This document shows positions 897-20,289 of a stretch of DNA of 64,000 nt, piece after piece. This DNA is from Hydrolagus affinis (taxonomy: Eukaryota): the NCBI GenBank assembly GCA_012026655.1, contig JAAILG010001348.1:1-64000 (forward strand), in the 5' to 3' direction. Each line of letters opens with the position of its first letter. Positions within the stretch are counted from its first letter, which is position 1. Below the pieces are notes generated by a model. That model was not told the origin of the DNA, did not search any database, and worked only from the letters and a program-made list of their open reading frames with translations. The translations under genes and the position numbers were made by a program.

Positions 897-1229
897 CCAA
901 GATGACATTGAGAACGAGTCCTGCTGAATCATTGGTAAATGAAGATGTACTCCTACAGTTTGAAATTGCTGACCTGACAGGCATTTCGTTGGATAGAAAC
1001 AATCTTGGAGTTCTGTGGGCCTTCAATGGTGAAACTATTATTCAATACAATAACGGAGTCTTGAACATTGCCTCGTCAGGCATTGAGCTGCTGGAAACTT
1101 CCATCCTAAAAGGAAACATGTCACTGTTATTGAAAAAGGTGACGATGAAAGAAATGGGAGAATATCAGTGCACAGTATTTGTGGCTCCAAATGAGCAAGC
1201 TATTGGCAATATAACTCTTGAAGTTTTAG
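897..1229 (+). CDS. Ig gene exon: IgV-type domain
   Basis: Acceptor ctacag|, donor |gtaagt, 333 nt. C-strand Trp (GVLW), GNMSLLL, F-strand GEYQC. Confidence 0.85.
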
Positions 1230-4200
1230 GTAAGTTACTGGTGATTGTTGCAAACATTATTTAAGAATCCTACAATCATGTTTGGTTTTGATATATCACA
1301 TCAGGAGGATTTCTCAAAGCGCTTGTTAAAAGCTTGTTAAAAGGAATAGTACATGTTTGTTTTGTACATAATAATAGTTATCCTTGGTATAGTGCCTTGT
1401 CACTTTGATTCACAATTATAACTGTAAGGTACTAGTATATTTGTAGGTATTTATATTACACTACAGTACTCATATTTGTTCTGGCAGCACGGCCCTCAGT
1501 GATTGTGGTTTCGGAAGAAAAGGTGGAAATCGGCCATGGAGGAGAGATGACCTTGGATTGTCAGCTAAATGGATTTTATCCTTGCAAAGCCAGTGCTGAG
1601 TGGTTTCAGAAGACGTCACAAGACGAAATTAAGCAGTTAACAGATATATGCATTAGCCAAGTATTCACCAACACCGATGGGCTGTGCAATATATCCATTG
1701 AGGTTCGACTGTTACCTGTCATGGAGGATATTGGTAGCACTTTCTACTGTGTTGCACAACACAAGACTTTTCAAGAACCATACTTTGCGGAAGCTCGGGT
1801 TACATTGAAAGGTTAGTTGCAGTGGTCTTTGTCCTTTATTAAAATGGTAAACATCAATTCTGATTCAAGGCGTAGGGGGAAAAATGTATAGGTGCATGTT
1901 AGATTTTTTTAGGAGAGTTTTGAAAACAGGGCTAAGAGGTGAACTTTTAGATCAAATTCGAAGATTGAGATGAGGAGGGATTTTGGGAGGGAGTTTAAGA
2001 GAATGGAAGTATAGATTTCTCAAGCTTGGCCATTGATGGTGGGGAAACCAGACACGGGCCCCAGTTTGTGGAATGGGCAGGAGAGAGGCTGGAGGAAATT
2101 GGAGAAGTTTGGGTATGACACAGGTGTGGAGGGATTTACCAATGACAGGATCGTGAAGTTGATCTGATGACAGGACAGTGAATAGTGGAGTTAGGCAAGG
2201 ATGAGTGAGTTTGTCGGCACACAGATCCTTGTGGACAGGATGTGGGAAAGTTGGGCTACTTACTGTTCAGCAGAAACAGGTACATTAAGCTGCAAGGTGA
2301 TAGACCTGTGAGGCGCCTGTTTTAACACCAGTATAAGATAAAGATGTAGTATTGAGAAAGTATGGTTGAAATATCCTTACTGGGTAATGATACAGCCCAT
2401 TTTCTCCAGAAAATTCCATGTTATTCTGCACAATGTTGAACTGATAGTTATGATCTTTGTTTGTCTCTCTGATTAAGCATTTGGCACTTGTTATTCTCTG
2501 CTGTAGCGTTCTGAGCTATTGAAAAATGAAGTCAATTTGAAAAGTATTGTAACTAAATCTTAATGTTTTTTGTTTATAGAGGTAGAAATTCGTATTTCCC
2601 ATGGATCGGTCGTTGCAAGTATTATCTTGAGCATTATATTCACTGTTGCAGCAATAATACTGGGGATCTTTGTCTATATGAAGTACTTTAATAAAGGTAA
2701 TCATCTGGAAATTTTGTGTGCTACTTTCTAGGAATATATCCCTGTGCGAACTAAGAGCTTAAGGGGATGAAAGCTTCACTGTCCAGTAGTTATGTAGATT
2801 CTCTTATGTATCTTGTATGGAACAGATCATGCAAGACTGTTGTCTCTTTTCCCCTTCATTCTAACATTCATAGACACATTTGTTGGGCCAGCTAAATGTT
2901 GTGACACCCCTTGCCATCCCATCATGTCTGTCCTGTCTGTATTAAAGAGCAATCCTATCAGTCCCATTTTACCTGCCCTTTCTCCATACCTTTACTTTTT
3001 AGGTATCTATCTAGTTTCCTTTTTGAAGCTAATATTAAGAGTGTATCAGATGTGACTGGAGCTGGTCATCAAAATATGTTGGACAAATGCAATTTGAAAT
3101 ATTCTTGCTTTGACTTATGTTGTTTTATTTTCAGTTCCACCCAAAATTTCAGATATCAAAAAACCTGCTCGTATTGTACATCAAGAATCTGTTGAATTAA
3201 TGTGCCATGTGTCTGGATACCAACCCGAAGACATTTCTATTAGTTGGTACCTGAAGAGTTTGAAGGAAAAGCAAAAAAAATTGATTGGGGAATATCATAA
3301 AAGTCAAATGCAAAGTTTACCTTTTATTGGTAAAAAGAACAAAATTCCAGGCCCTGACCCGGAATTTGCAATATATGAGAACCCTGATCAGTGGGAAGTC
3401 AAAACAGTCAATGTTCAAAAAAATAAGGATGGAACATTCAGTCTCTCCAGCATTCTTTGTATCTTTCCTGATATAACTGAACACAACAAAGCTGAAATCG
3501 TGTGTGACGTGAACCATCCATCTGGCAAAAGAGTCGTCAAAATCCTCTCTTTAGAGGTTACTGGAAGTAAGTGAACAAATGTCAATTGGAAAGTGACTTC
3601 TGTAATGCGTAGCTGCTGTGAAATGTTTTGCTATGGGGCACACGTCTCCCAATTTGTGCCCATTGTAATTAAAGTCGCAAGGTTCTACAGCCAATGCTTT
3701 CTCAAGCCTCACCATTTATTGGCCAATCTAAATTCAATACCGAAGATCCATGATTTGGAGTTTTCAGGTTAATGTCTTGTTGAGTTCTCTTCAACATCTT
3801 TTCCCTAATTGCTTTCTGGAGCCCGTGTCATTCTCTTTGTAGGTCATGGTTTTGTACTGTATATTCCATCTTCATTGGAACAACAACAACAAAATTACAT
3901 TTGTATAATGTCTTTCACGTCGGGAGGTCATCTAAGGTGCTGGACACTCAATGTTTCAGACCTGAGTTGAGGTCGGGATTGGGGAGGGTGAAGGTAAAGG
4001 AGGGGATTTGGGGTGATTGATGGGACTGTCGAAGAGGAGGGTCTTGAGGCAGTACTGGAAGGAAGCTAGGGAGGGGGCGAGGCGGAGGGTTTGCGGGATG
4101 GATCAGAGTGACTGAAGGCTCGCACGCCAATGGTGGGGTGGGTGAGTTGGCGGACGGGGAGCAGGCCGGAGCCCGCTGAGCGTGGGAGTGGGCAGGGGTC

Positions 4201-7200
4201 AGGAGGTTAGGAGGTCAATAGGGTGGGGCAAGGCCATAGAAGGCTTTAAAGATGAGGAACAGGATCTTGAATCCTCTGGGTGATGGGGAGCCAATGGATT
4301 CTGGTGAGAATGGGAAAGATTGGGTCACGGAGCTTGCAGCAGTAAAAGACACGGGCCTCAGAGTTCTGGATGATCTGCAGCCTATGGAGGTAGGAGTTTG
4401 GAAGACTGAATTGGAAGCAGCGAGTTGGCATAGTCCAGTCAGGATGTGATGAAGGCATGAATGAGAGTTTCAGCGGCCTGAGGGGCGAGGTAGTGGCACA
4501 GTCGGGCAATGTTGGGTAAGTGAGGGAAGACAGAGTGGGTCATGGTTTGGATATGTGGGAGACAGTTGAAGATCGAACAAGACACCTTGGTTCCTGATTG
4601 GCTTGGTGAGGTGAGGACTAGATAAGGGGCCAACACCATGCAGGAGATGACCCTGGTTAAAAAGAATAAGGTAAATGTTTGGTTGATGTTTGGGTTGTTG
4701 ATTAGATCCCATAGGAGGAACGAACACTGAGGGAAGTGGTGAATTCTATGGAACCCACATAGGCACAGTTCACTCAAATACTGCACTCCAGTGTCTGAAT
4801 ACACTGGTTTCTGGATCCAATCTGTTGGTCAAATGCCAAATCTGTATCCTTAAATCGAGGTGTGTTTGAGACATGCCGGAAAATCACTGTGGCAAATCTT
4901 TAACTTTGGTCTTAATTAGGAAACTGCAGTTCTTCTATATACTGTATATTATATATATACTTAAAAACTTGCAAAGTAAAAGTAAATTTTCTACAATTCT
5001 GTGTAGCCTTAAATTTAAGACCAAATTCATCCTGTATGAACAGTAACACCCGCTATCTCTGGTTCCTTGGTTTGATAGTTTTACCGAATCCCGAGTTAGT
5101 AATTCATGATACTGTACATTGTAGAAAAATAATGTGCTCGCCTTCAACAGATGATATTACTATCAAATGACTATTTACCTTCAAAGCTAATGTGGGATTC
5201 TAACCAAATTAATATCTTTTTTTCTTTCCCTTTAGTTCCTCCGCAATTGGATGAAATAATTCGACCTCCTATTGTGCTTCATAACAATTCAATCATGCTG
5301 ACGTGTCCCATTAATTTTTTCAAACCAAGCTCCTTGGTTATCAAGTGGTACAAAATAAAGGATATAGGGGAGAAACTTCTCATAGTACACTATGTTAATG
5401 GCATGGATAAAAACAGCTGTCAACCACAGTTTTCCCATAGTGTGAGTAAATTCAGTTATCCTAACCACACTGAGAGTATTCACAGCAAGCTGCTATTCAA
5501 TGCAACAATTGAAGAAGATGAAAAGAGTCAGTACTTTTGTGAAGTTCAGCATCTTGCTTTGCAGAACCCAGTTGAGAAAGTTGTCGAACTACATGTCAAA
5601 GGTAATTCTTTTAAGTTAACTTACACATAAGCAGTTACTACACTTTACAGTAAAACACTTTTATATATTTCAATGGCTGATAAGGTGCTATATCCAATGC
5701 AAGGATTACTATATGAAATATGTTGGAAGCAGTTTAAACTGTTCCTTTTCTTTTCCAGCTTTTCCAATCCTGAATACCATTGTGAGTGACCCATCAAACG
5801 CTGTAGTTGGAGAGAGACTGTCTCTGTCCTGCAAAGTGCATTCGTTTTATCCAAAAAATATAATGGTTCGTTGGTTTAAAAACAAGGAGCTTCTTGAAAC
5901 CGATGACATGATGAATGCAACTCAAGGCTCTCCTGAGAAAGAGTTGTTTGAACTGACCAGTCAATATACATTTACTGTGTCGCTCTCCGACCTGAGCTCG
6001 GTATACAAATGTGAGGTTGATCATGAGAGTCTCATGTATCCAAGAGTCGAACATTATATTCCTGAAAACCTGGGTATGTTTGAAGTTATTTTCTGCCAAG
6101 TCATTTTGTGAAGCACATTTTGTAGAAGAATACATTTTGTTTCACGTATTGACATTTTTTAATTAATTTGGATGAACATATATGTTGGGCTTAAGAGTTT
6201 TTATCTATTTTGTGCTTTTCAGTTGAATTGAAATTGTAATTGTACCTTATTTTTTTTCTTCCGTTTTCTCTGGATTTCAGTGTCTTTCCCAAAGGTATCA
6301 GAAGTGTTGAGCGACCCACCCATCCCTGAAATTGGAAAGAAGTTGACCTTAACCTGCACCATAAATGAGTTTTATCCAAAAGACATTCAGGTTGAGTGGT
6401 TCAGAGACAATGTGGCAATGGAAATGAATGGGGAATATGGAACAATTACAAAAGAATCATCTAGTAAAGATGGTCTAAACTGTATAGTTACCACAGTCAC
6501 CCTTACTCCAACCACTGATGACCATCAAGCCTTATACACAGTAGAAATTTGCCATTCAAAATCGTCAACCAAATCTTACAAGCAAACTTATCAGCTGTCG
6601 ATTAAAGGTAACTTGAAGAATAGTTTATTGCAGGAGACTACAAATGTCCATCAAGATGTAAGGAGATCAGGTGGGAACTATTTGAGCAAATGTAGGAGAT
6701 GAGTGTAACCCTAAAATTATACTAGAGGTATAGGTATGCTGTTACTGTCCAATGTTGCTTTTGAAATGGTAACTTTAATAAACCATTTGAAGTAAAACTG
6801 GACAATCCAGGACAGATGATAGTGATGCAGTATATATTTATTAGTCTGAGCTCAGGGAAAATAAAGTCTCAATTGTTCCCAGAAAATGTAACTTCTACCA
6901 TTTTCTGTTGGTGCTTAAAGGTAGTAAAAGAAACACACAACTCTACTGGCACATTTCTTTCTTCCTCGCCCTCACCAACTCCAAATTATATCCTAAGCAA
7001 GTGTTCTATGTAAGAGAATGCTCTTGAAAACCATGCTGAATTCTATATGTTCCTAGCTCTATTTGTTGTGATGTACTGGTTTAGCACTCGTGATACAAGG
7101 AGAGCTTTATTCAAATAGAAATTGTGTCTCTTGCACTAATTTGTGCTTGTTCACGTTATCAGAAACTATGGAGAGTTAATGATTTGTGTAGACATAACAT

Positions 7201-8448
7201 ATCTAGACAGGTTAATAAAATAGATTCATCAGGACTTATTCATATTTGTTACCTATTAAGTATTTTTATGATCTTGTTACAGGTTCCCCCAGATTTTCAG
7301 AATTCATACTGGAACCAAAGACACTTAAGTTTGGTAAACACGTATCTGTGTCCCAAACAATGACTGGCCTTTGCACTAAAGATTTTAGTATTGAGTGGTA
7401 CAAAGGGGATAATCATGTTATTGAAGAAGTTGTGAATTCCAGCCTAACTCAGGAAACTCAAAACACTTACAGCATGAATAGTTGTTTGAAATTCCTCCTT
7501 ACTGCAGAGGTCTTTGAAAAAGATATAAGTTTTCATTACAAAGAGAATACCAAAACAGATGTGTTCAAACGACATTGTCATTTGCCTCTGAAACGTGAGT
7601 ATATTCTGAGTATTTAATATATTTCTAAAATCTTGCAATAATTTTCACATTACTGTTTATTGGATTTAGTAGTCTTCTTTGCATGGATAGAAGCTTTTAT
7701 TTAACATGGGACCGATGCACTTCTGTATTTATCTTGTTACACATTAGTCTTTTCTATTGAACCATATTATTTTTATGATTAATAATTCATTAATAATATC
7801 CTTCAATAAAAAAGACTAACGTGGAATAAAATAAAGAAGTGCTTCAGTAATAATTATTAATAATAATAATCCTTGCATTTGATGCAACCTTTGCTTAATT
7901 TCTTATTGAAGCACATTACCTGCATTTTTGTAGTGCTTTCTCCAGCTCTGTTATGGGATGTCAACCTGGACTGTGGCTTGAACCAACTATCATCCTTTCT
8001 TGGAGGACTAAGCCAGGCTGACACATAACATCTTGTTAAAGCTCAGAACAGTTTTATTCCTTCTCATTAATTGTGTCATCATGCGGTTGCTGTCAGCGAA
8101 ACTTACATTGAGCATTGCTTCTGTGTCCTCGCAGGTGTATCTCCTATAGTGTCAGAAATCATATGCAAACCTGAACGACCCAAAATTGGTGAAATGTTAA
8201 CGTTGACTTGCACGATTGATGACTTCTGCCCGGGGGATATTACCATTCTTTGGAGTAGGGGATGGGTGGATTTCCACAATGAACAATTTTTACAGGAACC
8301 CCGCATTGGTGCAAATGGACTTTACTCTACGTTTTCGGAGCTGAAAATTAAGATGGAGCCAGACGATGAACCAGAGGAATTTAGTTGTGAAATTCGACAT
8401 GCAAAAACAAATGATGTTGTGGAGAAGTTTACCAATCTGTTGGCTTAG
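897..8448 (+). CDS. B7-H6/NCR3LG1-like IgSF membrane protein, 9 coding exons (V, C1, TM, 6 x C1-type), about 946 aa without leader; 5' leader exon not found
   Basis: Nine AG/GT-bounded exons join in one frame, all with phase-1 junctions. The V-domain end GEYQCTVFVAPNEQAIGNITLEV resembles human B7-H6 [22 protein letters not shown]. The gene sits next to KCNJ11-ABCC8, as NCR3LG1 does in human. Orthology is inferred, not tested. Confidence 0.8.
1488..1811 (+). CDS. Ig gene exon: IgC1 domain (extracellular)
   Basis: Acceptor ggcag|, donor |gttagt, 324 nt. LDCQLNGFYP...W...FYCVAQH is a C1-set signature. Confidence 0.9.
2580..2696 (+). CDS. Ig gene exon: transmembrane segment
   Basis: Not in the ORF track; read by hand. 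Acceptor ttttttgtttatag|, donor |gtaatc, 117 nt. Translates EVEIRISHGSVVASIILSIIFTVAAIILGIFVYMKYFNK: about 24 hydrophobic residues followed by basic residues. Confidence 0.85.
3135..3566 (+). CDS. Ig gene exon: post-TM C1-type domain 1, with about 30-aa insertion
   Basis: Acceptor ttttcag|, donor |gtaagt, 432 nt. LMCHVSGYQP...W...DGTFSLSS...VCDVNH. Confidence 0.85.
3935..4700 (-). mobile_element. Decayed L2-clade LINE 3' fragment
   Basis: Frameshifted pieces AAETLIHAFITS and LQIIQNSEAR...IHWLPITQRI, typical of the L2 ORF2 C-terminus. Confidence 0.8.
5236..5601 (+). CDS. Ig gene exon: post-TM C1-type domain 2
   Basis: Acceptor ccctttag|, donor |gtaatt, 366 nt. LTCPINFFKP...KW...YFCEVQH. Confidence 0.85.
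5759..6073 (+). CDS. Ig gene exon: post-TM C1-type domain 3
   Basis: Acceptor ttttccag|, donor |gtatgt, 315 nt. LSCKVHSFYP...RWF...YKCEVDH. Confidence 0.88.
6281..6607 (+). CDS. Ig gene exon: post-TM C1-type domain 4 (F-strand Cys lost)
   Basis: Acceptor atttcag|, donor |gtaact, 327 nt. LTCTINEFYP...EWF...YTVEICH. Confidence 0.85.
7283..7594 (+). CDS. Ig gene exon: post-TM degenerate C1-type domain 5 (both canonical Cys lost)
   Basis: Acceptor gttacag|, donor |gtgagt, 312 nt. SPRFSEF...VSVSQTMTGLCTKDFSIEWYKG. The open frame and exon size match the neighbouring exons. Confidence 0.75.
8135..8448 (+). CDS. Ig gene terminal coding exon: post-TM C1-type domain 6
   Basis: Acceptor tcctcgcag|. 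LTCTIDDFCPG...LW...GLYSTFS...FSCEIRH, then TAG at 8446-8448. Confidence 0.82.
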
Positions 8449-19164: not shown

Positions 19165-20289
19165 TCATTCAAAGATAGCCTTCTTTTTGAATGAGCGCCG
19201 TTTCGACGGCAACTCAAAGACGGGTGCCATGAGAGTGATGCCCTCCGATTCCATGCTCTGTGCGCTAACGTTCGGGGTGGGCACCTTGACTGTGTTTCCA
19301 AACTTGGAGTAATCGACCGAGTACTTCCCGTCTTCCTCCGTCACCACCGGCACAAAGCGATGGCCCCAGAGGATCTCGTCGGACAAGTAGGAGGTCCTGG
19401 CTTGGGTGGTGATGCCCGTCGTCTCCACCACCCCCTCTAGGACCACAATGACCTCCAGCTCCTGGCGTTGGAGATCGGCGGGCTTCACCGTGTACAGGGG
19501 ACTGTCCTTGTCGATGATGTGTGAGATGACCAGCGGGGACACCAGGAAGATGCCGTTGGTGTCTACCGGGTTGTCCATGCGGATGTCGATCTGGTTGAGG
19601 GGCTGGACCTCGCCTTCCGCGGTCTCGGTCTTGCAGACCACCTGCATGCGGATGCTGGCGCTGATGATCATGCTCTTCCTCAGGTCGCCCACCCTGAACA
19701 TGAAGCACAGCTGGCTGTGCCTGGGGGCGATGACGGCGTGCTTGCTGAAGATGAGGGTCTCGGCGCGCCGGTGGGCTTGCGAGGTCTTCATGAAGATGCA
19801 GCCCAGCATGATGGCGTTGATGACCAGCCCCACGATGTTCTGGATGATGAGCACGGTGATGGCGCTCGGACACTCCTCGGTGATCATGCGACCGCCGAAG
19901 CCTATGGTCACCTGCACCTCGATGGAGAAGAGGAAGGCGGAGGTGAAGGAGTGGATGCTGGTGATGCACGGCTGGTTGCTGGGCGGGCGATGGAGGTCAC
20001 CGTGGGCGAAGGCGATGAGCCACCAGATCATGGCAAAGAGCAGCCAACTGCACAGGAAGCTCATGGTGAACACCACCAGGGTATAGGGCCACTTGAAGTC
20101 CACCAGGGTGGTGAAGACATCCTGGAGAAAGCGGCCCTGCTCTTGGATGTTGGTGTGAGCCACATTGCAGGTGCCGTTCTTGGCTACGAAGCGAGCCTGG
20201 CGTCTCCTCTCCTTGTAGATGGGCTGGGACACGTCCTCTGCCAGACGCAGCACATACTCCTCGGGTCGGAGGGCTTTACTGGCCAGCAT
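19165..20289 (-). CDS. KCNJ11: ATP-sensitive inward rectifier K+ channel Kir6.2, intronless, 374 aa
   Basis: TIGFG selectivity filter, [11 protein letters not shown]-terminus and [14 protein letters not shown] motif, collinear with human Kir6.2. Intronless CDS directly downstream of ABCC8, which distinguishes it from KCNJ8. Confidence 0.96.

Follow-up and report, generated by a model that had tools for sequence, protein, structure and literature searches.

A predicted B7-H6-like membrane protein gene of the chimaera Hydrolagus affinis with six C1-set Ig exons after the transmembrane exon

The stretch of DNA analysed in this work (hereafter the window) consists of positions 1 to 64,000 of contig JAAILG010001348.1 from Hydrolagus affinis. 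Judged from its sequence, it carries the chimaera ortholog of a B7-H6 (NCR3LG1)-like gene that is conserved among jawed vertebrates outside the amniotes and is uncharacterised. The product is probably a B7-H6-like type I membrane protein that bears a cytosolic rod of six C1-set Ig domains as a scaffold or sensor, and that has a transmembrane (TM) exon that can be skipped.

Exon structure and domain content of the gene

Nine exons on the + strand were identified between 897 and 8448, at or within a few bases of where the initial annotation had placed them. The exons and the neighbouring gene are as follows.

897 to 1229, + strand: V-type Ig exon; splice acceptor at its start, phase 1 at both ends, weak Pfam V-set match
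1488 to 1811, + strand: predicted membrane-proximal extracellular C1-set Ig exon (C1a); Pfam C1-set above the cut-off, RNA depth of 4-10 reads
2580 to 2696, + strand: TM exon of 39 codons including the split codon; supported by hydropathy, conservation, and RNA depth
3135 to 3566, + strand: D3, post-TM C1-set Ig domain with an insertion; supported by Pfam, the AF2 model of the ortholog, and RNA depth of 5-16
5236 to 5601, + strand: D4, post-TM Ig domain; Pfam score just below the cut-off, confident Ig fold in AF2
5759 to 6073, + strand: D5, post-TM Ig domain; Pfam C1-set, RNA depth of 3-11
6281 to 6607, + strand: D6, post-TM Ig domain without the canonical disulfide; Pfam C1-set
7283 to 7594, + strand: D7, post-TM Ig domain without either canonical cysteine in the window; Pfam C1-set
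8135 to 8448, + strand: D8, last post-TM Ig domain and protein end; Pfam C1-set, TAG at 8446-8448
19165 to 20289, - strand: KCNJ11 (Kir6.2), a separate neighbouring gene used as synteny anchor; ORF of 374 aa, PDB Kir6.2 match with E 7.6e-180

Each of the nine exons has an AG acceptor, a GT donor, and a polypyrimidine tract, and each is in phase 1 with a length that is a multiple of 3. The first acceptor and all 16 internal splice sites are intact. The exons join into 945 open codons before the first stop, TAG at 8446-8448, which bears out the open phase-1 frame proposed earlier. The order of the encoded parts is V, C1, TM segment, six C1-set domains, and stop. The post-TM part was measured as 688 aa and the intron between the TM exon and the next exon as 438 nt, in agreement with the initial annotation (about 690 aa and 438 nt). 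No further exons of this family were found 3' of D8 in the window, and no TM or anchor signal follows D8 at the end of the window protein.

Since the V exon opens at a splice acceptor, a leader exon should precede it. None was found on the window contig or in the Callorhinchus model, whose starting Met lies within the V exon. The leader exon is missing from the window because the contig starts at window base 1, only 896 nt before the V exon and inside a tandem repeat, which places the leader exon off the contig. A signal peptide is present in 13/13 elasmobranch orthologs, including an ortholog from an RNA contig.

The TM exon has an acidic start, followed by 23 hydrophobic residues and a basic, Tyr-rich stop-transfer flank. 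Its 19-residue Kyte-Doolittle mean is 2.84, and a scan of all 945 residues found no other hydrophobic segment, which upholds the earlier description of a clean TM exon with no second TM segment. The TM exon is strongly conserved over 15 orthologs (dN/dS 0.42).

The V exon matches Pfam V-set weakly (23.1 bits against a cut-off of 26), and the C1 exon matches C1-set with 23.7 bits against a cut-off of 21. The Callorhinchus ortholog (P0192), which is 69% identical to the window V exon in amino acids, reaches 71 bits for V-set. The B-strand Cys of the V domain, present in 14/14 orthologs, is replaced by Phe in the window (codon 959-961). The B7-H6-like nature of the ectodomain is borne out by comparison with solved structures and by the neighbouring gene. 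Chains of human B7-H6/NCR3LG1 are the only PDB matches of the window C1 exon at E<=1e-4 (E 5e-6). The ortholog ectodomain matches B7-H6 with E ~1e-22, and its next match is at 1e-11. The V exon alone gave no B7-H6 match, only weak CEACAM1 and CD276 matches. KCNJ11 lies 10.7 kb downstream on the minus strand, and Callorhinchus locus L005 is arranged likewise. Human NCR3LG1 also adjoins KCNJ11.

The six post-TM domains were described as C1-type in the initial annotation, and the HMM profile check calls C1-set for all six exons. Five of the six pass the Pfam C1-set gathering score of 21 singly (D3 41.7, D5 52.1, D6 45.5, D7 22.1, and D8 40.7 bits), and D4 reaches 19.8 bits for C1-set and 20.2 bits for V-set. 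Every post-TM domain scores higher for C1-set than for I-set, and the whole ortholog scores 186 bits for C1-set (PF07654). In the AF2 model of ortholog residues 256-941, all six domains fold as confident beta sandwiches (mean pLDDT 87.9), and D3 carries a disordered insertion of ~25 residues with pLDDT of 30-39. Foldseek matches of the array model are Ig heavy-chain constant regions, UrIg2, SIRP-gamma, and titin.

The Cys(B)-Trp(C)-Cys(F) core is present in C1a, D3, D4, D5, and D8 of the window. Among the orthologs, the Cys pair is kept in 14/15 for D3, 14/15 for D4, 15/15 for D5, and 14-15/15 for D8, and that of D3 is often lost in paralogs. D6 has Val on the F strand in the window and Val or Ile there in 15/15 orthologs, with the B-strand Cys kept. 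D7 has neither Cys in the window; in the orthologs its F-strand residue is always Phe or Leu, and its B-strand position is variable. An N-x-S sequon in D4 (model residue 418) is found in 12/15 orthologs and is kept as well as the ectodomain sequons. A conserved motif precedes the protein end, which has the same position in all 15 orthologs.

Orthologs, family members and selection

The window gene and Callorhinchus LOC103174893 are 1:1 orthologs with 79% identity. One-to-one orthologs with the same layout, 941-974 aa in length and with the same end residue, were found as 13 RefSeq species models and one Logan RNA contig. The partial model of the Narcine ortholog is 890 aa long. At least 66 non-redundant database cluster representatives have this layout as well, with signal peptide, V, C1, a single internal TM, and an array of 3-12 or more C1-like domains without a second TM. 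These members come from sharks, rays, chimaeras, reedfish (Erpetoichthys), coelacanth (Latimeria), lungfish (Protopterus), and amphibians (caecilian, salamanders, and many frogs). The members that were looked up carry the name "uncharacterized". One family fragment is named SIRP-beta-like. No published description of this layout was found in the searchable literature, which did not cover key B7H6 papers.

Neutral divergence like that between the window and Callorhinchus (dS ~0.2) would be expected to leave ~20 stops (minimum of 10 in 500 simulations). Neither species shows one. The dN/dS is 0.53 for the array and 0.82 for V. It is ~1 for D4 and D5, and 0.25-0.53 for TM, D3, D6, D7, and D8 (lowest in D6 with 0.25; D7 0.43).

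These values bear on the possibility that the gene is decaying to a transcribed pseudogene in the window species, so that its odd layout would have no functional meaning there. That reading could draw on the Cys to Phe change in the V domain, which occurs only in the window genome, on the unfound leader, on the intron retention after D3 seen in one RNA run, and on the high dN/dS of D4, D5, and V. We regard it as very unlikely, given the intact splice sites, the open frame that neutral drift since the Callorhinchus split would have interrupted, the low dN/dS of the other five regions, and the expression of the locus from the correct strand; the absence of the leader is explained by where the contig starts.

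Transcripts and the side of the membrane

Stranded polyA RNA reads from three runs (X2, X3, and X4) were mapped to the window locus. The read depth is exon-shaped and on the correct strand, hence the locus is expressed. Position 2690 in the TM exon is covered by 6, 2, and 1 reads in X2, X3, and X4, compared with 4-12 in the flanking exons, and both introns beside the TM exon are nearly empty (0-2 reads). The TM exon depth is about equal to that of the neighbouring exons in X2 and X3. In X4, the mean depth of the TM exon is ~2.6 against 6-11 in its neighbours (a quarter to two fifths), and at single positions 1 read against 7-12. One run also shows retention of the intron after D3.

The whole layout in one message is exhibited by a skate-like Logan contig (L004, SRR5172152, 3886 nt), the sole full-length RNA contig found. 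It carries a 5' adapter and no introns, and runs from an ATG at 185 through signal peptide, V, C1, TM, and six C1 domains to a stop at 3082, followed by 800 nt of 3'UTR. Its TM exon is joined directly to D3. An elephant-shark paralog entry (V9K7L7, P0174) also contains the TM and the array, with several residues unlike the genome model. The TM exon is thus present in polyA RNA at the locus and joined to the array in a relative. For the window genome itself, read depth and the transcripts of relatives, rather than reads across the splice joint, suggest the linkage of TM to D3.

The initial annotation treated the locus as one gene, and this stands. The alternative of a short V-C1-TM B7-H6-like gene and a separate six-C1 gene with its own leader in the 438-nt interval is largely refuted and most improbable: the shared phase 1 does let any Ig exons join in frame and one ATG-to-GT phase-1 candidate leader exists at 2924-3002, but this candidate is weakly hydrophobic, frame-shifted by a 1-nt deletion in Callorhinchus, located in a segment that is repetitive in a DNA run, and covered at a mean RNA depth of 0-0.8 against 2-15 for D3, and the fused layout is kept in the L004 transcript, 15 orthologs, and 66 family members.

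The TM exon is probably a cassette exon. It is included in nearly all gene models of the family, and RefSeq isoforms that are missing exactly this exon are annotated in Microcaecilia (caecilian, isoform X3) and in a Heterodontus (horn shark) paralog (isoform X3). Together with the low TM exon depth in X4, these isoforms indicate that a secreted eight-Ig isoform probably coexists with the membrane form, and that the form with the TM may not be the sole or main product.

Topology rules would place the array in the cytosol, and the family-wide statistics favour this location. Among the 66 members, which share ancestry so that the counts are not phylogenetically independent, the canonical Cys pair is present in 73/80 (91%) of C1-like domains before the TM and in 180/351 (51%) after it (p 2e-12), N-x-S/T sequons occur at 1.70x expectation before the TM and 1.11x after it, and the net charge around the TM is -0.6 before and +2.9 after, which fits type I. 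The Trp is kept in 94% family-wide despite the loss of Cys pairs. The intracellular array proposed in the initial annotation is therefore favoured in part. The orthologs keep four Cys pairs (D3, D4, D5, and D8) and one sequon (D4), as is expected of an array that also functions where conditions are oxidising and proteins are glycosylated, and TM-skipped isoforms are annotated.

These last features could also mean that the array works outside the cell. The relevant product would then be the TM-skipped secreted eight-Ig protein, which might act on NKp30-type receptors as a soluble decoy or an opsonin-like ligand, and the tail of the TM-containing form would be tolerated and not functional. The two annotated cases of exact TM exon skipping, the several-fold lower TM exon depth in X4, and the Cys pairs and sequon conserved over ~15 chondrichthyan orthologs agree with this, and C1-set domains are elsewhere extracellular and, to our knowledge, so far known only outside the cell. 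We nevertheless consider it unlikely. In the other two runs the TM exon reaches the depth of its neighbours, and it is included in the sole full-length RNA contig and in nearly all gene models. Family-wide, half of the post-TM domains are without the Cys pair, and sequons occur about as often as expected by chance. Moreover, ending the protein after the TM would be cheaper for a membrane form, yet no stop or read-through signal is used there (0-1 intron reads). We thus prefer the reading in which the membrane form carries a cytosolic array.

Proposed mechanism and comparison with known systems

In the preferred reading, the principal mRNA would consist of the leader (off the contig), V, C1, TM, and six C1-set exons in one frame that ends after the last Ig domain. 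The signal peptide would direct V-C1 to the ER lumen, from where it would reach the cell surface as a presumed ligand of NKp30-type receptors. The hydrophobic exon and its basic C-terminal flank would stop transfer. No other hydrophobic segment occurs in the last 688 residues, which would be synthesised in the cytosol and form a rod of six Ig-fold domains. If butyrophilins with their B30.2 tail are taken as a model, this tail would most likely serve as a folded scaffold or sensor inside the cell and would control or report the display of the ectodomain. Skipping of the TM exon, which is in phase and a multiple of 3 in length, would give a secreted eight-Ig protein from the same gene.

We tentatively suggest, as a possibility that falls short of our main reading, an NK-ligand family whose C1-set Ig tail is a functional intracellular scaffold or sensor working inside-out like butyrophilins, with a TM cassette that switches the array between the cytosol and the outside. 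If true, the display of a B7-H6-type ligand would be coupled to cell state in non-amniote jawed vertebrates, and one mid-gene cassette exon would place the same array in the cytosol (membrane form) or in the extracellular space (secreted form).

Human B7-H6/NCR3LG1, the NKp30 ligand (PDB 3PV6, 4ZSO, and 6YJP), is the best solved-structure match of the window C1 exon and of the ortholog ectodomain. Both proteins have V and C-type Ig domains and one TM, and the window protein is predicted to share the type I plan. They differ in the tail. The tail of human B7-H6 is short and non-Ig, with Gag-like similarity and tyrosine motifs, whereas the window gene encodes six C1-set Ig domains (688 aa) there.

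Butyrophilins (B7-related V-C-TM proteins with a cytosolic B30.2) resemble the predicted window protein in having a B7-like ectodomain and a folded cytosolic beta-sandwich domain. They offer a working model in which the tail binds something intracellular and alters what the ectodomain shows. Their tail is a single PRY/SPRY domain and their locus is another one, in contrast to the six tandem C1-set Ig domains of the window gene. No PRY/SPRY (B30.2) match was found by Pfam in any window exon or ortholog.

The SIRP family (V-C1-C1) is an example of C1-set domains outside the antigen-receptor and MHC families, and SIRP-gamma ranks with the best matches in sequence and in fold. However, all SIRP Ig domains precede the TM. 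By E-value, titin I65-I70 (PDB 3B43) ranks first among the Foldseek matches of the six-domain model. Titin consists of cytosolic tandem Ig rods in which, as in the window array, some domains are without a functional disulfide. The overall TM-scores are low (~0.2) because only the bead-on-string plan is shared. Titin domains are I-set and have no signal peptide or TM, whereas the window domains score best as C1-set, a TM is present, and the orthologs have a signal peptide.

Shark UrIg and UrIg2 have a non-rearranging V and many C1 domains, with the TM at the C-terminal end, and belong to the antigen-receptor/MHC complex (PMC12227049). All Ig domains of UrIg2 are therefore extracellular. UrIg2 (PDB 9DMX) likewise comes from a cartilaginous fish, has a single V and a long series of C1-set domains, and was one of the matches of the array in sequence and in fold. 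The window gene differs from UrIg2 in that its TM follows the second domain, its protein ends without a TM, and its locus lies beside KCNJ11.

Exon structure and identity of the gene

The gene consists of nine exons on the + strand between 897 and 8448. All nine have canonical acceptors (a polypyrimidine tract and AG) and GT donors, a length that is a multiple of three, and phase 1. The third exon carries the transmembrane (TM) segment and D3-D8 denote the array behind it.

Exons of the gene
897-1229, + strand: V exon, weak V-set match (Pfam)
1488-1811, + strand: second exon, C1, C1-set match (Pfam)
2580-2696, + strand: third exon, TM, with 23 hydrophobic residues between an acidic start and a basic Tyr-rich flank
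3135-3566, + strand: D3, C1-set match (Pfam)
5236-5601, + strand: D4, C1-set match (Pfam) slightly below the cut-off
5759-6073, + strand: D5, C1-set match (Pfam)
6281-6607, + strand: D6, C1-set match (Pfam)
7283-7594, + strand: D7, C1-set match (Pfam)
8135-8448, + strand: D8, C1-set match (Pfam), ending in the TAG at 8446-8448

The spliced exons form 945 stop-free codons that close at TAG 8446-8448, and the protein has no hydrophobic segment besides that of the TM exon. D4 is the sole exon among C1 and D3-D8 that falls under the Pfam C1-set cut-off. The initial annotation reported a V-C1-TM layout followed by six C1 domains in frame with no second TM, and the splice sites, open frame and hydropathy agree with it. 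Its exon coordinates and its gap of 438 nt between the TM exon and D3 were correct, as was its post-TM part of about 690 aa, which measures 688 aa. The observation is confirmed.

The best-matching protein is Callorhinchus milii LOC103174893 (P0192), which shares 79% identity over 941 residues and is colinear exon by exon. KCNJ11 (Kir6.2) lies 10.7 kb downstream of the gene on the opposite strand, and a Kir gene lies 9.5 kb downstream of LOC103174893. These features make the source a holocephalan distinct from Callorhinchus. The only solved structures that matched the C1 exon at E<=1e-4 were chains of human B7-H6/NCR3LG1. The ectodomain of a shark ortholog matched B7-H6 at ~1e-22 and the next protein at 1e-11. 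The V exon alone was too diverged to retrieve B7-H6 from the solved structures. By ectodomain similarity and the adjoining KCNJ11, the gene is placed with B7-H6, to which it has been likened in this work, and the B7-H6-like character first proposed for it is upheld by these matches.

The contig, which belongs to a highly fragmented assembly of 1.11 Gb, has its first base at position 1. A leader exon was not found in 1-896. A 35-bp tandem repeat occupies positions 1-70, so that the contig begins within it, and this is probably the reason for both the assembly break and the absent leader exon. The Callorhinchus locus has an array of the 35-bp repeat of ~0.9 kb (L005:8746-9670) located 0.3-1.3 kb upstream of the V exon. 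A tblastn search with nine N-terminal (signal-peptide) sequences of the family gave no match in the 10 kb upstream in Callorhinchus. The RefSeq model of P0192 (L005:10001) starts with a Met within the V exon and lacks the signal peptide that 13/13 elasmobranch orthologs have. Either the chimaera leader is unannotated or the TM serves the protein as a signal anchor. Positions 121-480 hold a high-copy element with many 'atatcgatat' motifs, for which 40 scored candidates of the 6444 found at first look in the genome are 83-89% identical.

Transcripts and conservation of the layout

The skate-like ortholog P0190, whose nearest model is from a skate (80% identity), is encoded on Logan contig L004 (3886 nt, run SRR5172152). 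The contig has a sequencing-adapter remnant at its start and no introns. From the ATG at 185, it encodes a signal peptide, then V, C1 and TM, and behind them six C1 domains up to a stop at 3082, followed by an 800-nt 3'UTR. In L004, a single assembled message, splicing has placed the TM exon after the C1 exon and ahead of the array. The elephant-shark paralog V9K7L7 (P0174) in UniRef also has the TM and an array, and several of its residues differ from the genome-derived model. Its accession series is presumably derived from transcript assemblies; no record of a nucleotide contig encoding P0174 was found.

Reads were compared with positions 1450-7449, where X1 is a genomic DNA run and X2, X3 and X4 are stranded polyA RNA runs of one sample. 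The RNA cover at the locus is exon-shaped and comes from the + strand in X2, X3 and X4. The reads stem from this locus because they share variants with the DNA run, which is from the same organism or a very close one. In X2, X3 and X4, respectively, the depth at single positions was 5, 2 and 10 reads in the C1 exon, 0 in all three in the intron upstream of the TM exon, 6, 2 and 1 at 2690 in the TM exon, 0, 1 and 0 in the intron downstream of it, and 8, 1-3 and 12-16 in D3. The summed depth of the TM exon is similar to that of its neighbours in X2 and X3 and about a quarter to two fifths of theirs in X4, all of these being small numbers. The RNA evidence in the window is one of depth; the joints listed all come from high-copy repeats, and 1811>2580, 2696>3135 and 1811>3135 are not among them.

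Several other features were observed in these runs. Very high-copy repeats lie within two introns (~3850-4650 and 5650-5850); their summed contig depth in the DNA run is as high as ~846,000, and every RNA run has transcripts of them from both strands. At the beginning of the intron that follows D3 (3567-3850), cover is 6-7 reads in X4, against 7-16 in D3, and 0-3 in the other runs. This cover in X4 is either partial intron retention or pre-mRNA, and reading through the intron meets a stop two codons in. All RNA reads, and likewise the other individual's DNA contig, have C in place of A at 2690, which converts Asn to His in the juxtamembrane flank. The DNA of that individual differs from the assembly at ~1.3% of positions.

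An exhaustive profile-free search with exon D3 as query retrieved 252 representatives, of which the best 150 were examined for layout. Of these 150, 66 have a single internal TM, behind which lie 3-12 C1-like domains without any further hydrophobic segment. The members come from sharks, rays, chimaeras, reedfish, coelacanth, lungfish, a caecilian, salamanders and many frogs. The longest of the matches, P0001, has 2158 aa, and P0167, a member of a Xenopus cluster, has 2597 aa. All of the ~40 members looked up are named "uncharacterized protein", "Ig-like domain-containing" or similar, and one family fragment carries the name SIRP-beta-like. A second search gave a tight orthogroup made up of one RNA contig and the RefSeq models of 13 species; its members are 941-974 aa long, apart from a partial Narcine model of 890 aa. 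A signal peptide is present in 13/13 elasmobranch members, and 15/15 orthologs (the one in the window included) have a highly conserved TM exon and the same terminal residue after a conserved C-terminal motif. This arrangement of the mRNA is genuine, ancient and not a local accident. Judged from these sequences, the layout is conserved across the sampled non-amniote jawed-vertebrate groups, and this species appears as one more instance.

Family members share contig MU249848.1 in Callorhinchus (LOC103174893, LOC103174895 and LOC121850342) and a chromosome in Pristis (LOC127577890 and LOC127577746), Heterodontus (three) and Protopterus (LOC122810504 and LOC122810505). The two lungfish genes are in tandem. 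The family may therefore be locally clustered. The anurans have large expansions. Strongly acidic Asp/Glu/Ser-rich linkers occur between post-TM Ig domains in paralogs of horn shark and elephant shark, namely at residues ~958-990 of P0174, and after residue 266 and near 1483-1509 in P0161 and P0003. Asp/Glu/Ser-rich composition is commoner in cytosolic disordered regions.

Predicted placement of the array and its alternatives

By standard topology rules, D3-D8 would lie in the cytosol because the protein has a signal peptide, a 23-residue hydrophobic segment and no later one, and this placement is well founded as a prediction. Among the 66 members, which are related sequences, the 15 residues ahead of the TM carry a net charge of -0.6 and those behind it +2.9, with the flank after the TM more positive in 59/66. 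In the same related members, N-x-S/T sequons reach 1.70x the shuffled expectation before the TM and 1.11x after it, with the higher density before the TM in 56/66. The canonical B/F Cys pair is present in 73/80 pre-TM C1-like domains versus 180/351 post-TM (Fisher p 2e-12, from counts that are not phylogenetically independent), and the core Trp stays at 94% while the Cys pair drops. These three signals agree with a cytosolic array.

The serious rival holds that the main importance of the array lies in a secreted, TM-skipped isoform. In RefSeq, a caecilian gene and a horn-shark paralog each have an isoform that lacks nothing but the TM exon (37 and 31 residues, respectively) relative to its sisters. 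The TM exon is a probable cassette because of these exact TM-less isoforms and its reduced depth in X4. Its skipping would keep the frame and give a secreted eight-Ig protein, which probably coexists with the anchored form. Among the 15 close orthologs, the Cys pair is found in none for D6 and D7 and in 14-15 for D3, D4, D5 and D8, and a D4 sequon is kept in 12/15, as well as the two conserved ectodomain sequons. D6 has an unpaired B-strand Cys in 15/15; therefore, Cys conservation by itself is no proof of a disulfide. The pattern would fit an array present part of the time in each compartment via two isoforms, and it is the main reason for limited confidence in an exclusively cytosolic role. 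The intracellular C1 array of the initial annotation is thus partly supported, by its mRNA architecture and family-wide signals, while its cytosolic placement stays a prediction with a secreted isoform probable.

A pseudogene is unlikely. The V-domain B-strand Cys (959-961) is uniquely Phe (TTT) in this assembly and Cys in 14/14 orthologs, which favours a pseudogene, and the Phe could mean that the V disulfide is truly lost, or be a polymorphism or an error of assembly. However, the maintained open frame and the expression of the locus speak against a pseudogene, and this reading was rejected. Neutral drift at the Callorhinchus distance (dS ~0.2) would give ~20 stops (500 simulations, minimum 10), and 0 occur in either species. 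Against Callorhinchus, V-C1 has a dN/dS of 0.73, the TM exon one of 0.42 and the array one of 0.53; within the array, D6 has 0.25 and D4 and D5 have ~1. Such values are typical of fast-evolving immune ligands. A separate leader-bearing gene for the six C1 exons behind the TM exon, the alternative named at the outset, was looked for in the 438-nt interval and rejected: the lone candidate leader (ATG 2924 to donor 3002) is frame-shifted in Callorhinchus, practically without RNA cover and weakly hydrophobic.

Fold and comparison with known Ig-domain proteins

AlphaFold2 predicted six confident beta sandwiches for the Callorhinchus tail (22-sequence alignment, mean pLDDT 87.9), with a disordered insertion in D3. 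The Foldseek neighbours of this model are tandem-Ig proteins, namely titin I65-I70, the IgE and IgM heavy chains, UrIg2 and SIRP-gamma. Membership of the titin family was considered and rejected.

Possession of C1-set domains marks antigen receptors, MHC, tapasin, SIRP and a few B7 members. To our knowledge, these domains are treated as strictly extracellular or luminal, and we know of no counterpart of this tail in described B7 members. The full-text literature gave no account of B7H6-like genes with Ig domains that follow the TM; key work on B7H6 evolution lay beyond its coverage, and an earlier mention is possible. If the placement is true, this conserved family, which is at least 400 million years old, would have 3-12 or more C1-set domains behind a stop-transfer anchor and would break the extracellular-only rule. 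It would also reveal the ancestral tail of the NKp30 ligand before its replacement in amniotes, and a new receptor-ligand architecture, either a folded cytosolic Ig rod or a topology switch by one cassette exon. The sequences are already public as "uncharacterized protein".

Butyrophilins have a cytosolic B30.2 domain. Membership among them was rejected, as no B30.2 was found in the exons of this gene or its orthologs. UrIg2 shares with this gene the possession of many C1 domains. However, those of UrIg2 all precede its C-terminal TM (PMC12227049), and membership of that family, which was also considered, was rejected on this ground.
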